In this document: positions 25,967-60,322 of the stretch, in pieces | Numbering within the stretch: position 1 is the first letter of the stretch | How the letters are laid out: the number at the start of each line of letters is the position of its first letter | DNA from: Camelus ferus | Taxonomy: Eukaryota | DNA: 64,000 nucleotides | Assembly: GCF_009834535.1 (NCBI RefSeq) | Contig: NC_045713.1 | Location: 868,001-932,000, forward strand | Direction of reading: 5' to 3' | Notes under the pieces: generated by a model | What the model was told of the DNA's origin: nothing | What the model saw: the letters and a program-made list of their open reading frames with translations, nothing else | The model's database searches: none | Position numbers and translations under genes: made by a program

Positions 25967-28900
25967 ATGGACCTTGAGGACCCCGACATCTTTAATAGGG
26001 ACCCCCGGGACCACTATGACCTGCTGCAACGGCTGGGCGGCGGCACCTATGGGGAAGTATTCAAGGTGAGGAATCCCCTCCTTCTCCATCACCCTCAGAC
26101 CAGAGATCTTTGGGGTGAGGCCCAAGAAGGGAAGGGGATGCAATAGGGTCCCAGTCCTTGGCTTTGGTTCAAGGATGCTGAGGAGAGCTCAGGCGAATGG
26201 AGCCTGCCTGACTGCCAACTTCCCCTTTATAAGGCTCGAGACAAGGTGAAGGGGGACCTGGTGGCACTGAAGATGGTGAAGATGCAGCCTGGTGAGGAGA
26301 GAACCCAGGAGTGCCTTCCCCACACCCCCACCTCCTGGGACACTGGGATCTCTCCCAGACCCCTTCCCTGCAGCGGCCTTTTCTCTCCGGCCCCTCCTTG
26401 CAGATGATGATGTTTCTACACTTCAGAAGGAAATCCTCATCTTGAAAACTTGTCGGCATGCCAACGTCGTGGCCTACCATGGGAGTTATCTCTGGTGATG
26501 AGCTTAAGACCTGCCCTGGGACCCAGCCCAGCCCCTACCCCCAAACTCCCATTCCTGACGAGGGTACCCCCTACCCTGACCTCGATCATGGATCCTCATT
26601 TTTAACTGGGGCACCCCTAACTGGATCTCCAAGTCAAAGGCCCACTTCTCTGACCAAAGGATCCCCAAATCTAATCTCCAATCCAGAACTCCCATTTCTT
26701 ACAAGGGGTCCCCAAAATGGATCCCTTGTAGTAACCAAACCTGAACCAAGTCCCCTAAAACCAATCTTTCATACTCCTACTCATCAGGTCCCCCGGTTTC
26801 ACTATCTGTTCCTTTAATATGAACCCCTAAATTCCCTGACCCTCAAACTAATATCCCAGATACCTCAATAATGACTTCTGTTCCCTATACCTGGCACCCT
26901 GGCCTCCTCTGTCGCCTCCGAACTTTCACAGCCTGTGAAGTCTCTACCCTGTCTTCTAGATTAGAGTGGAACAGCAGAGGTGCTCTGGCTTAGGAGCCCA
27001 AAGACCTGGGTTTGATTCCAGTTGACCTTGAACATATTATTTCCTCTCTGAGCCTCAACTTCCCCATCGGAAAAATGGAAATGGGACTGTCTCACTCTGG
27101 TGGGCAAGAGAGAGATGGCAGCTCTTACACTGAAGATCTTGTTGAACTAGAACAAGGCAGTGGGCTAGGAGCTGTCCTACAAATGATTTATTACTGCTAT
27201 TGTGATTGCTCTCGAACTGTTGTAGGCTGCAGAGGCTCTGGATCTGCATGGAATACTGTGGGGCGGGTTCTCTCCAGGGTATCTACCAAGGTGAGAGGAG
27301 CCCCTGCTCCTCCAATCCACCCCTTCTGTCCCTCTGCCATTGTGTCTCCTGGGACTGCCTTTCTGGTCCATATTTCACACAATGAGCCCCTTCTCTGGGC
27401 CTGACCTGACCTGGATGATGCTGGGGATGTGACAGAGCAGGCCCTGAGCCCTGTCCTCCAGGACCTGAGAGTCCAGCCCTAGTCTTTCTGCAGGCAGTGA
27501 CCCATCCTCCTTCCCCCGCCCCATCTTCCTCTGTGTCTGCTTTTCCTTGCCAAGGTCTACTCACAAATTTCAGTATTTCTGCATTTCTGGCTAATTGTGA
27601 TTTCATGCCCACATGTTCATTTAAGCAGTGAATGCATTTCTGATTCTCTCAGCCTGCTTTTCGCTCTCTTGGAGCATTTGAGGGTGGGGGCGGGGTAGGT
27701 CTCTGATCACTTCTGGATTACTGATGTGCACCTCTGTCTCTGAACAACTCCCTGTCTCCACAAAGCTCAGGAAAGGAAGGACTTCATTAGGAAGTCCTAG
27801 GCGGGGAATCTGTGGCCCACAGAGAAGAACTGACTCACATCACCAGCTGTCAGACCTGCTCTGTGCCCTCTCTGTCTGTGTCTATATTGTCCCCTCTGAA
27901 TCTCTGTTTCTCAATGTGTCTGTTTTCCCACTTCTTGGTCTCTGCCCAGCTCGCTCTTTGTCTGCCTCAGTTTGGATCTGTTTCTGATTTTCTGGCCCTG
28001 TCTCTGTCTCCCTCTGACTTTCCTCATTTTCACAAAGTCACATCACCTCCTGCTCAGAGCCCTCCCAAGCCTTCCATTTCCCTCCAACAATAAGCCCAAA
28101 TTTCGCATCACAGCCCACGAGTCTGACGCCCACAACCACCCCAGGCTGACCCACCTTCTCTCCACTCCACCCACTTTGCCAATTTCCAGGCCAACCAGAC
28201 ACTTTCCTACCTCCGGGCCTTTACACTTGCTCATCTTGTTCACGTTGAGTGGGAATGCTCCCATCCTCAACCCCGTCACCTTCTCAGAGTTGCTTTGCTG
28301 ATCACCCAGTATAAAACGTCATACCCCTTCCCACACATATTTCCTGTTGTCTTTTCTTGCTTTTGTTTTTTTCTATTTATTCGCATCTCACATACTGTTT
28401 CTTTCACCTAGATCTCTTGTCTACTGTCCGTTTCCCCCACTGGAACATTCTCTCCACGAGGGTGGGGATCTCTGTCTCTGTGTCCACAGCTGTGTCCGCA
28501 TTGCCTACCACGGCGCCTGGCACACAGTAAATGTGTAGTCTGTTGAATAAATCTATCTCCCTCTGGCCTCTGGTTCCCTGCATCGCTGCCTCTCTTTTGC
28601 TGACCATTCCTTGTCCCCTCCTGTTACCCCCTCTCCATGTGGTACGTGGTGTGGGTGGCAGCCAGGGGCTCCTGGGGCCAGGTTTCCTGGTCCCCATCTG
28701 ACACCATGCCAGGGTGACCTTTGCAGTCACAAGCCCCCTGTCAGAGCTCCAGATCAGCTATGTCTGCCGGGAAGTGCTCCAGGTGAGGCGATGCTTGGTG
28801 GGTTTGTGTGGGGGGAGGCGATGCTTGGTGGGTTTGGGTGGGGGCAGGTCTCTGCTCACACCCCCAGAACACACACAGCCCCCCTCTCCATCCTCCTTCC

Positions 28901-59100: not shown

Positions 59101-60322
59101 ATCAAATATTTATTGCTTTTGATGGGCTTTAAACAGTTTTGCTGTTCTTTGTCCAGGTGAAACCACAAAAGACATAAGTATAGCTGTTCAAATGATGAAA
59201 AGGATCCACTCTGTGATGGAAAAGTACCCAGAACTTTTGCAAGAGGCAGACCAACAACTCATAGCCAGATGCCTTAGGTATTTAGGATTTGAGGAGTTGG
59301 CAAGTTCTGTGCATCCATCCCAGGTAATGCTTTCAGAATAGCTCCACTTTAGTTATTAGGTATACATAAAGTGTCTTGTAGACACCATGACCTCTTTTAG
59401 ATTTTTTTTTACTGAAAATATTTACTCTAAGTTCTTAATCATTGTTAGTAATCTAGCTGCCCCAACTTGAAGTAATCCAGAGTTAGAAAATTGTGCACAT
59501 GCTTGTCTGGACAGGCAAATTAAATGCCAGATAATCTCTGCAGACCTTTAAAATCAGTCCTGTGTTTGATTCTAGCAAAACATTTAAAAGCTGTACTGTG
59601 ATTGCTCAGTTGTCTTTATATCAGACCTAGCTCAGATATCGTGGTGGGCATGTGAAATCTTGATGTCTGCTAATTATTTACTCTTAGTTAAGGTGACGAT
59701 TTAGGTGGGAAAATATTTCTTCAATAAACATACAAATCTAAAAGGTGGTGGGTGCTTTTCTCATAAAATGATTTAATTATTTTATTAAAAATAATATTTT
59801 AATCATTTAAATGATGTAATTTTTTGTGTTCTAAAGTTGTACATTTTAGCAAACGTGGTTTAAAAAACAATGCCAAGAATCCAAGTGACAATGGTAGGTC
59901 TTTTCTTTTTGTTGTTGGAGTATAGTTGATTTACAGTGTCAGTTTCAGGTGTACAGCTAAATGATTCAGTTATACATACACATACATATATACATATTTT
60001 TTTCAGATTCTTTTCCATTGTATGTTATTTCAAGAAATTGAATGTAGTTCCCTGTGTTATACAGTAGGACATTGTTGTCTGTCTATTTTATATATAGCAG
60101 GGTGTATCTGTTAAATGGTATAATTTAAAATCAGCTTCAAAATGGACTTTTAAAATATCGCAGGTCACAGGAAATGACATAAAAGAGAAGAAAAAGAATA
60201 AATACTCAGTTGGCATTGGGCCAGTTCGGTTTCAGCTGCAGCACATGGGCCAGTATTTGGTACGAGAGGAGAGGAAAGACCCAGACCCCAGGGTTCAGGA
60301 CTTTATTCCTGACACTTGGCAG
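38192..60322 (+). CDS. DDX60: DDX60 (DExD/H-box helicase 60) N-terminal region, 12 exons, 680 open codons; own first coding exons absent; cut by a gap just before Walker A
   Basis: Exons 38192-38533 (DAEYAYFNFPELL...), 40102-40218, 41297-41458, 42784-42942, 46904-47045, 48035-48190, 51638-51743, 52199-52314, 53603-53763, 57352-57604 (ETKAEIITRENKKRLF...), 59157-59323 and 60164-60322 (...DPRVQDFIPDTWQ). All GT-AG, phases concordant, 2040 nt, no stop on manual translation. Confidence 0.93.
40612..40716 (+). mobile_element. Short LINE-1 3' end with A-tail
   Basis: GTATATGCGTAACTGGGACATTGTGCTGTACGCCAGAAATTGACACATTGTAACTGACTGTACTTCAATAAGAAAAAAAA. Confidence 0.75.
42620..42735. repeat. Degenerate 10-bp tandem repeat (TCACGCAGGG/TCACGCAGCC)
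   Basis: Roughly ten imperfect units just upstream of the exon acceptor at 42783. Confidence 0.8.
43125..43280 (+). repeat. Degenerate hexamer repeat (GGGGCC/GGGTCA), G-quadruplex-prone
   Basis: GGGGCCGGGGCCGGGGCCGGGGTCAGGGCCGGGGCTGGGGCGAGGGCCAGGGTCAGGGTCAGGGTCAGGG... Confidence 0.85.
43406..43444 (+). terminator. AATAAA followed by genomic A24 (retroposon tail or intronic poly(A) site)
   Basis: AATAAA at 43406-43411, A-run at 43421-43444, then (GAAA)n. Confidence 0.55.
45569..45750. mobile_element. MER5A-like hAT DNA transposon fossil
   Basis: GTGGTTCCCAAAGT...CAGCATCACCTGGGACCTTGTTAGAAGTGCAGATTCCTGGG...TTTGAGAATCACTG. Confidence 0.8.
45890..46180. mobile_element. MER3-like hAT DNA transposon fossil
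   Basis: GTAGCCAGCAGCCATAAGTGGACAGTGGGCACTTGAGATGTGG...GATAATATTTTGGATATGTTGGGTTGAATGAAAT. Confidence 0.65.
49250..49480 (+). mobile_element. LINE-1 ORF1 fragment
   Basis: Translation HTNIRITGVPEREERQKGPEEIFEEIITENLPNL matches the L1 ORF1p RRM region. Confidence 0.85.
53860..55965 (+). mobile_element. Fragmented LINE-1 ORF2 and 3' UTR (contains 201-N gap at 54495-54695)
   Basis: KVGVAILIPYKIDF, KIQRSVVFLYTNKKLSEKEIKK and QIKTTVRYHFTHVRMAIIK...LKIELPYDPATPLLGI, with internal deletions and stops. Confidence 0.9.

Follow-up and report, generated by a model that had tools for sequence, protein, structure and literature searches.

A truncated MAP4K1 copy upstream of a DDX60 gene lacking its 5' end in Camelus ferus: a probable recent rearrangement and a fusion that is possible on paper

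Introduction

We focus on a locus of Camelus ferus at which part of a kinase gene and part of a helicase gene have come to lie close together. The DNA analysed, hereafter the window, comprises 64,000 nucleotides (nt) of RefSeq assembly GCF_009834535.1 (contig NC_045713.1, positions 868,001 to 932,000), and all position numbers refer to its full length. It is interrupted by three runs of N (12635-12734, 54495-54695 and 60345-60444), the remainder being mammalian genomic DNA. On its plus strand lie twelve exons of a truncated copy of MAP4K1, the gene for the kinase HPK1, followed by decayed MAP4K1 exons, a fragment of RYR1, a segment termed X and finally twelve coding exons of DDX60 (Table 1). 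An earlier note on this DNA had proposed that the two sets of exons are spliced together in frame as a chimeric immune gene. What lies around and within them points instead to a recent, probably non-functional rearrangement, which appears to be real and to be undescribed, the latter because no paper reporting it was found.

The kinase exons of the truncated MAP4K1

The MAP4K1 exons in question belong to one of several duplicon copies in the window, labelled A to D, and copy B corresponds to the MAP4K1 copy 2 of the earlier note. Exons 1-12 of copy B total 927 nt, or 309 open codons equivalent to human residues 1-309, with AG/GT splice sites at every exon; exon 12 closes in phase 0 at a GAG/GTGAGT donor at 31405. 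When seven of the exons were compared with the PDB, human HPK1 was the best match (residues 1-33, 54-82, 155-177, 179-220, 223-242, 244-270 and 271-309). The kinase frame differs from the human sequence at 34 of its 309 residues, 25 of which fall among the 213 residues checked in this way. Among these is G202H, found in both copies A and B, by which the near-invariant glycine of the DxWSxG motif (subdomain IX) is lost. Read by eye against human HPK1, prolines presumably also replace L144, A148 and L195, of which the PDB comparison confirmed L195P only. Exons 9-12 retain only 108 of 128 human residues in the same comparison. Set beside a functional HPK1, the copy has the catalytic motifs; it lacks the subdomain IX glycine as well as the proline-rich and citron-homology part of the protein, of which the last exon alone is left.

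Copies A and B can also be compared with each other. Their kinase exons show 12 nonsynonymous codon differences over 708 sites and 4 synonymous ones over 219, a ratio of nonsynonymous to synonymous divergence (dN/dS) of about 1 that rests on 16 codons. Derived changes are present in both copies, those of copy B itself being E194Q, A205T, V223I and K252R when polarised by the human residue. The kinase exons would therefore seem, from these counts, to drift at about the neutral rate.

The DDX60 block

For DDX60, comparison loci were taken from Logan contigs of two other mammals (L001 and L002) as well as from finless porpoise (L006) and hippo (L007), whose loci are annotated. All 12 DDX60 exons of the window are bounded by AG/GT, the first acceptor AG lying at 38190-38191 in phase 0. 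Residues 89-768 of eutherian DDX60 align with their conceptual product end to end and gap-free, hippo and whales being 80% identical to it. Both the porpoise and the hippo locus run collinear, over 26 kb, with 22.4 kb of the window (37926-60339). Maximum-likelihood analysis placed the window as sister group of hippo plus whales; its branch is 0.140, compared to 0.127-0.137 in the sister lineages. Because this branch is about as long as those of its sisters, the exons appear to have evolved like those of a working DDX60 until recently, and the block as a whole is, judged by its alignments, orthologous. We take the locus to be the rearranged DDX60 of a cetartiodactyl not belonging to the whale-hippo clade; a camelid would fit this placement.

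The DDX60 exons are interrupted once by N. The sequences flanking the gap at 54495-54695 are collinear with, and in the same order and on the same strand as, a single intron of porpoise and hippo DDX60 according to their alignment coordinates. As the protein alignment is unbroken as well, the gap is intronic and the reading frame, which passes over it by a phase-0 to phase-0 splice, is untouched. At 60322, just short of the helicase core, the block stops; a scaffold gap and then duplicon copy C follow, and the DEAD/helicase core is outside the window and may exist beyond it. What the window offers of DDX60 is therefore an orthologous stretch with neither a complete PIN-like domain nor a helicase core.

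The 5' part of the block has an unusual base composition. In the exon at 38192-38533, the G+C content of third codon positions is 0.67, compared to 0.34-0.38 in two other mammals, and in the following intron 110 changes from A/T to G/C were counted versus 51 in the opposite direction. A CpG-rich island (42000-43600; GC 0.61, observed/expected CpG ratio 0.8) surrounds the DDX60 exon at 42784-42942, which itself has a GC content of 0.69, and contains a 10-bp GCGTCACGCA repeat. These figures suggest that strong GC-biased substitution has acted on this part of DDX60 in this lineage. An artificially recoded sequence, considered in view of an exon dS above 1.1 beside a dN of 0.09, was ruled out: the changes are third-position A/T-to-G/C transitions, and the intron has the same bias. 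As a separate observation, a DDX60-like exon fragment was seen in the porpoise locus 10 kb upstream of DDX60 (L006 1-124), where it resembles the window exon at 57481-57612 (70% over 132 bp).

The species' own DDX60 and an annotated fusion were both sought in databases. A query with the DDX60 exons yielded only fragments of at most 82% identity. A profile built from a caecilian DDX60 and the window exons, imperfect in that MAFFT scattered the short exon rows, found many eutherian DDX60 proteins; their identity did not exceed 81%, and a kinase domain was present in none of them. Exact look-ups of the products of two open reading frames of the window found none on record, and scans of metagenomes for the deletion junction described below and for a 24-mer of a lineage-specific exon gave 0 matches.

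Loss of the DDX60 5' end

The earlier note had remarked that the start exons of DDX60 were not found. They are indeed absent from the window, and the comparison goes further in that these exons are deleted rather than merely unfound. L001 and L002 can be aligned with one another over a length of 4 kb. In both, residues 1-25 and 26-88 are encoded by exons that sit 0.7-2 kb upstream of the next exon. Moving upstream from 38192, the window remains similar to both contigs for about 265 bp, after which similarity drops to the level of shuffled sequence, and the hippo DDX60 N-terminus has no match in the whole window. Beyond this point, the window continues with native DDX60 upstream flank from a region much further 5' (Table 1), so that 10,943 bp of the hippo locus, comprising the promoter and both exons for residues 1-88, are absent; the porpoise locus agrees. 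No DDX60 exons that could splice normally to 38192 were seen in the 38 kb of the window upstream, a case that the earlier note had named as fatal to its proposal.

The junction is sharp, and the two breakpoints in the hippo sequence share no repeat or similarity. For this reason, we regard the loss as a real end-joining deletion; a collapse of the assembly between repeats was ruled out, the breakpoints being without similarity. As for its age, we estimate a rate of about one disabling hit per 1.35 million years (My) in 2040 nt, by which 680 intact codons would place any loss of DDX60 function within the last ~4 My. DDX60 is listed as eroded in cow, sheep, goat and Tibetan antelope (PMC7498332), and in the literature found, ruminants are the only group with a reported loss.

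An open frame across the two halves

The MAP4K1 and DDX60 parts are both on the plus strand of one contig, with no N within 12735-54494, and phase 0 on both sides of the candidate join gives 309 + 680 = 989 open codons. The earlier note had relied on the same features, namely an open MAP4K1 copy 2 with a phase-0 donor at 31405, a phase-0 DDX60 acceptor followed by 680 open codons, and no N gap between them; all of these hold when coordinates, splice sites and the 12 DDX60 exons are checked. An in-frame MAP4K1-DDX60 fusion is therefore possible on paper. The compatibility is not remarkable in itself, as we estimate from known intron phase frequencies that phases would match by chance about 1 time in 3.

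From the side of the protein, the join is less inviting. When 30 DDX60 proteins were aligned, the residues D30, E33, D40 and D42 were invariant; all four fall in the deleted part. An AlphaFold model of the first 200 residues (predicted local distance difference test score, pLDDT, 71) has strands at 36-40, 79-83, 116-118, 139-144, 169-173 and 185-188, which places the exon boundary (residue 87) between strands 2 and 3. Its fold matches are weak, to PIN and FEN-type nucleases, in agreement with the Pfam name PIN-like_DDX60. A fusion would, according to this model, join a drifted kinase to two-thirds of a PIN-like fold.

The sequence between the halves offers competing splice outcomes. The acceptor of MAP4K1 exon 13, which starts at 31632, is intact; a TGA follows after 9 codons, and TA is found where the donor is expected. 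In exon 14, the acceptor AG is changed to GG and a TAG stands in frame, lesions common to copies A and B. The damage that the earlier note had listed here (stops in exons 13 and 14, the dead exon 14 acceptor and the frameshifted terminal exon) is thus confirmed by sequence check, and so is its caveat that the exon 13 acceptor and the poly(A) site at 33118 compete with the fusion splice, both being intact and accompanied by a strong terminal-exon acceptor. Exon 12 is separated from 38192 by sequence with five poly(A) hexamers. A stop is reached within 8-14 codons whichever of exons 13, 15, 16 and the terminal exon is joined to exon 12; with the terminal exon, the stop comes after 10 codons and within the last exon, which would predict a stable kinase-only message.

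This last join underlies the possibility that the two parts act separately, as a kinase-only HPK1 fragment whose message escapes nonsense-mediated decay and as an N-terminally truncated DDX60 made from another start, for instance in the island at 42.0-43.6 kb. The kinase-only fragment of HPK1 that caspases generate is active in human and mouse cells, which together with the position of the stop in the last exon would suit the first part; the CpG-rich island and the first in-frame Met of the DDX60 fragment, at residue 80, would suit the second. However, the drift of the kinase and G202H apply here equally, and the GC content of the island is raised in porpoise too, so that it may only reflect GC-biased substitution. 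We hold such a division of labour to be very unlikely.

A working, lineage-specific fusion would have exon 12 spliced to DDX60 coding exon 3, skipping the decayed exons and the poly(A) signal, with transcription driven from the promoter region of the duplicon, the HPK1 kinase domain standing in for the first half of the PIN-like domain, and DDX60 continuing past the scaffold gap. Apart from the geometry, it can draw on the actual deletion of DDX60's own promoter and start codon, on the normal evolutionary rate of DDX60 and on a kinase frame that is unexpectedly intact compared to the exons downstream; moreover, the TA at the exon 13 donor position and the dead exon 14 acceptor leave both exons poorly defined. 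It is opposed by the dN/dS near 1 between the kinase copies and by G202H, by the cut through the PIN-like fold with the loss of its invariant acidic residues, and by the intact terminal-exon acceptor and AATAAA in between. No link to the helicase exons exists within the window, the contig that follows being a further duplicon copy. Finally, no kinase-DDX60 protein is found among the top 120 public relatives of DDX60, and no paper was found that mentions one or that links MAP4K1 structurally with DDX60. On balance, we consider a working fusion quite unlikely.

The duplicon copies and the quality of the assembly

By self-blastn, copy A (1-12634) and copy B (23231-35905) are 98% identical, copy C (60445-64000) matches 32918-36471 of copy B, and copy D matches 32922-34386 at 94% from 12735 to 14196, where its divergence from B starts. 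The chr19-derived homology common to copy D correspondingly stops at 34386 (Table 1).

Table 1. Features of the window with their positions, strands and remarks
Feature	Position	Strand	Remarks
Duplicon copy A	1..12634	+	EIF3K 5' end, truncated MAP4K1, RYR1 3' end, segment X; self-blastn, MAFFT
Duplicon copy D	12735..16680	-	Intact MAP4K1 terminal exon (plus strand, 12763-12830), several RYR1 3' exons (minus strand)
EIF3K exons 1-2, copy B	23671..24680	-	Open reading frame list; PDB eIF3k residues 19-53 identical; CpG profile
MAP4K1 exons 1-6, copy B	25967-26065, 26234-26291, 26404-26494, 27226-27290, 28727-28782, 28904-28951	+	
MAP4K1 exons 7-12, copy B	29117-29159, 29253-29325, 29865-29996, 30404-30466, 30703-30784, 31288-31404	+	
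Decayed MAP4K1 exons 13-16	31632..32513	+	Exons of the citron-homology half absent
MAP4K1 terminal exon and AATAAA at 33118	32951..33123	+	Frameshifted by a 1-bp deletion in A and B; C and D intact
RYR1 3' exon fragment	33888..34386	-	PDB RyR1 4931-4954, one change
Segment X	34387..36775	.	2.4 kb; follows the RYR1 fragment in A, B and C
Native DDX60 upstream flank	36776..37925	+	Hippo orthologue: L007 29-1653, at 8.5-10 kb upstream of the start codon
Deletion junction	37925..37926	.	~10.9 kb lost (hippo L007 1654-12596); repeat-free ends
DDX60 intron tail, last 266 bp	37926..38191	+	Pyrimidine tract, acceptor AG 38190-38191
DDX60 coding exons 3-14	38192..60322	+	12 exons, 2040 nt, 680 open codons, residues 89-768
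Assembly gap	54495..54695	.	Inside the intron between exons 53603-53763 and 57352-57604
Scaffold join (100 N), then duplicon copy C	60345..64000	+	Distinct paralogue; 55 substitutions from A/B, 15 common to D

The order and orientation of EIF3K (minus), MAP4K1 (plus) and the RYR1 3' end (minus) are those of the human chr19 locus, and the duplicon is therefore a copy made at the level of DNA and not a retrocopy. EIF3K exon 2 in the duplicon is identical to human eIF3k residues 19-53 in the PDB. With introns kept, several diverged copies and disabling lesions, the MAP4K1 part has the features of an unprocessed pseudogene in a segmental duplication. The differences among copies A/B, C and D are phylogenetically structured, and C and D, which share 15 sites against A/B, are by this pattern true paralogues. 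The terminal exon of MAP4K1 is in frame in D (12735-12830) and C (60445-60545) and frameshifted in A and B, which implies that the copies are at different stages of decay; in copy D it ends in NLYIQE, like the human MAP4K1 C-terminus. Taken together, the duplicon family of EIF3K 5' end, truncated MAP4K1 and RYR1 3' end has, on this sequence evidence, at least four diverged copies of chr19 origin. Copy D was considered as the parental chr19 locus itself and thought unlikely to be it: read by eye against RyR1, its last RYR1 exons have several substitutions and an in-frame insertion. Over RyR1 4881-4933, copy D has a single D-to-E change relative to the PDB.

Segment X is multi-copy, at 98-99% identity, and has no alignment anywhere in the porpoise or hippo DDX60 loci. 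It was entertained as a piece of a tandem DDX60 duplication, which this lack of a match in both loci ruled out. Two kinds of repeats accompany the duplicon and the gap. A tandem array of 19.5 copies of a 103-bp unit (92% identity) occupies 19800-21809, between the RYR1 exons of copy D and a fragment resembling a long interspersed nuclear element (LINE). Such LINE-like fragments lie at 22600-23350, the left end of copy B, and at 54740-55640, just after the 201-N gap, and have many matches in the porpoise locus.

Since the duplicon copies are so alike, the assembly itself has to be questioned. MAFFT alignment of A and B gave 154 substitutions and 78 indel events, 64 of them of one base and mostly outside homopolymers, with a transition to transversion ratio of 69:85 (0.8). 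The differences are concentrated between 27.7 and 33.2 kb, and divergence is nearly nil in the flanks and reaches 5% between 29.7 and 33.2 kb. In 16 of the 22 indel columns comparable among three copies, copy A is the odd one, so that the six 1-bp indels in its kinase exons may be errors. The copy differences look, at least in part, like assembly error, and the order across the 100-N joins is to be treated as provisional; the DDX60 helicase exons may or may not come next.

It could then be argued that near-identical duplicon copies were threaded wrongly, that the 100-N joins are arbitrary and that the true neighbour of DDX60 is perhaps a frameshifted copy or one without kinase exons. The error-like spectrum of one-base indels and transversions fits this view, as do the mosaic of unsubstituted flanks and a divergent centre, the near-identical copies of segment X, and contigs that open at the identical duplicon position after both 100-N gaps (12735 and 60445). 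Against it, the junction of RYR1 with segment X recurs in three copies that differ by substitutions, no N stands between 12735 and 54494, and whichever copy of segment X truly neighbours DDX60, duplicon sequence lies on its left all the same. The deletion junction, moreover, joins two non-repetitive orthologous sequences, and assemblers do not invent such joins. We therefore see mis-threading as unlikely.

A probable recent and non-functional rearrangement

Given the above, we favour a recent, probably non-functional rearrangement over a working fusion, with a probability of roughly 60% on the sequence evidence. One of at least four diverged duplicon copies, containing an unprocessed, truncated MAP4K1 whose citron-homology half is deleted and whose exons 13, 14 and last are broken, sits about 3.5 kb upstream of the deletion junction, and a simple end-joining-type deletion of about 10.9 kb took the DDX60 promoter and two coding exons (residues 1-88). 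In transcripts of the duplicon, exon 12 would most likely be followed by exon 13 or, through its strong acceptor, by the terminal exon, with the end at the AATAAA at 33118; the largest product would be the kinase alone, at about 318 residues. The headless DDX60 would be intact either by virtue of the recency of the deletion (less than ~4 My at our rate) or due to another DDX60 copy. The in-frame join of exon 12 to DDX60 would then follow from the geometry alone and account for a minor read-through isoform at best.

Several observations weigh against this account. The catalytic motifs of the kinase are all kept (glycine loop, VALK lysine, HRD, DFG and APE), the DFG and activation segment is identical to human at 23 of 23 residues, and exons 1, 3 and 8 are identical to human HPK1 in the PDB at 82 of 85. 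There are no stops, frameshifts or splice lesions in the 927 nt and 22 splice sites of the kinase exons versus 4-5 lesions in about 300 nt downstream; a simple neutral model of our own puts the probability of 0 lesions at 0.03-0.001 for 2-4% lineage divergence. The 680 intact DDX60 codons, without a promoter of their own, need some explanation too. Furthermore, the CpG island at 24500-25100 has an observed/expected ratio of 0.95-0.97, as in active, unmethylated islands. It lies over EIF3K exon 1, and what the earlier note had called the retained CpG promoter is this EIF3K island; the region of MAP4K1 exon 1 itself has a ratio of 0.2. The uneven conservation along MAP4K1 and the mosaic divergence between A and B suggest gene conversion or assembly mixing, either of which would make the open kinase frame less surprising.

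A bolder way to account for that frame is that in this lineage the deletion took the 5' end of the interferon-induced helicase DDX60 and connected the rest with the kinase domain and promoter of a duplicated HPK1. The outcome would be a kinase-helicase protein or, at the least, a DDX60 that needs an open HPK1 leader to be translated. If the latter were true, the kinase frame would be held open while its amino acids drift. We think this distinctly improbable. What remains of the fusion put forward earlier is its geometry, which is right and is reinforced by the deletion of the DDX60 5' end. The further step to a chimeric immune gene is unsupported, given a kinase dN/dS of about 1, G202H, the cut PIN-like domain, a helicase core outside the window and no kinase domain in any public DDX60 relative.

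If a fusion did turn out to be true, it would be a rare case of an innate-immune gene rebuilt by exon shuffling at the level of DNA, from a T-cell signalling kinase and an antiviral helicase. More generally, open frames in duplicated and gap-flanked regions of assemblies need confirmation by long reads and RNA before genes are called.

Comparison with known systems

The closest parallel to the MAP4K1 side of the locus is found in mosaic segmental duplications, such as the primate pericentromeric and subtelomeric duplicons. In both, unprocessed partial gene copies are diverged and retain their introns, fragments of neighbouring genes are copied together (here three, with the chr19 order EIF3K, MAP4K1, RYR1 kept), and internal deletions, disabling mutations and placement beside an unrelated gene occur. 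Unlike these, the copy in the window keeps a 309-codon kinase frame and stands head-to-tail with a gene that has newly lost its 5' end. The potential product of the truncated copy is similar in extent to the caspase-cleaved N-terminal fragment of HPK1. The latter consists of the kinase domain only and is made by proteolysis of the full protein, whereas the product of the window would be encoded as such and differs from human at 34 of 309 residues.

For the fusion, TRIM5-CypA (TRIMCyp) of owl monkeys and macaques comes to mind. It arose by retrotransposition of a complementary DNA (cDNA), kept its own promoter and N-terminus, and is expressed and antiviral. The likeness is that a gene of innate immunity gains, or in the window would gain, a foreign domain by lineage-specific insertion and in-frame splicing. 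In contrast to TRIMCyp, the foreign part in the window would provide the promoter and the N-terminus, came as genomic DNA and splits a domain.

On the DDX60 side, the erosion of the gene in ruminants (PMC7498332) is likewise a lineage-specific loss of DDX60 integrity in cetartiodactyls. The window differs from it in that DDX60 lacks its 5' end only, the other 680 codons being intact and evolving at a normal rate. Even without a fusion, the loss of the promoter and first exons would represent a second, independent hit to DDX60 in cetartiodactyls after the ruminant erosion, and it would matter for the antiviral biology of the lineage.

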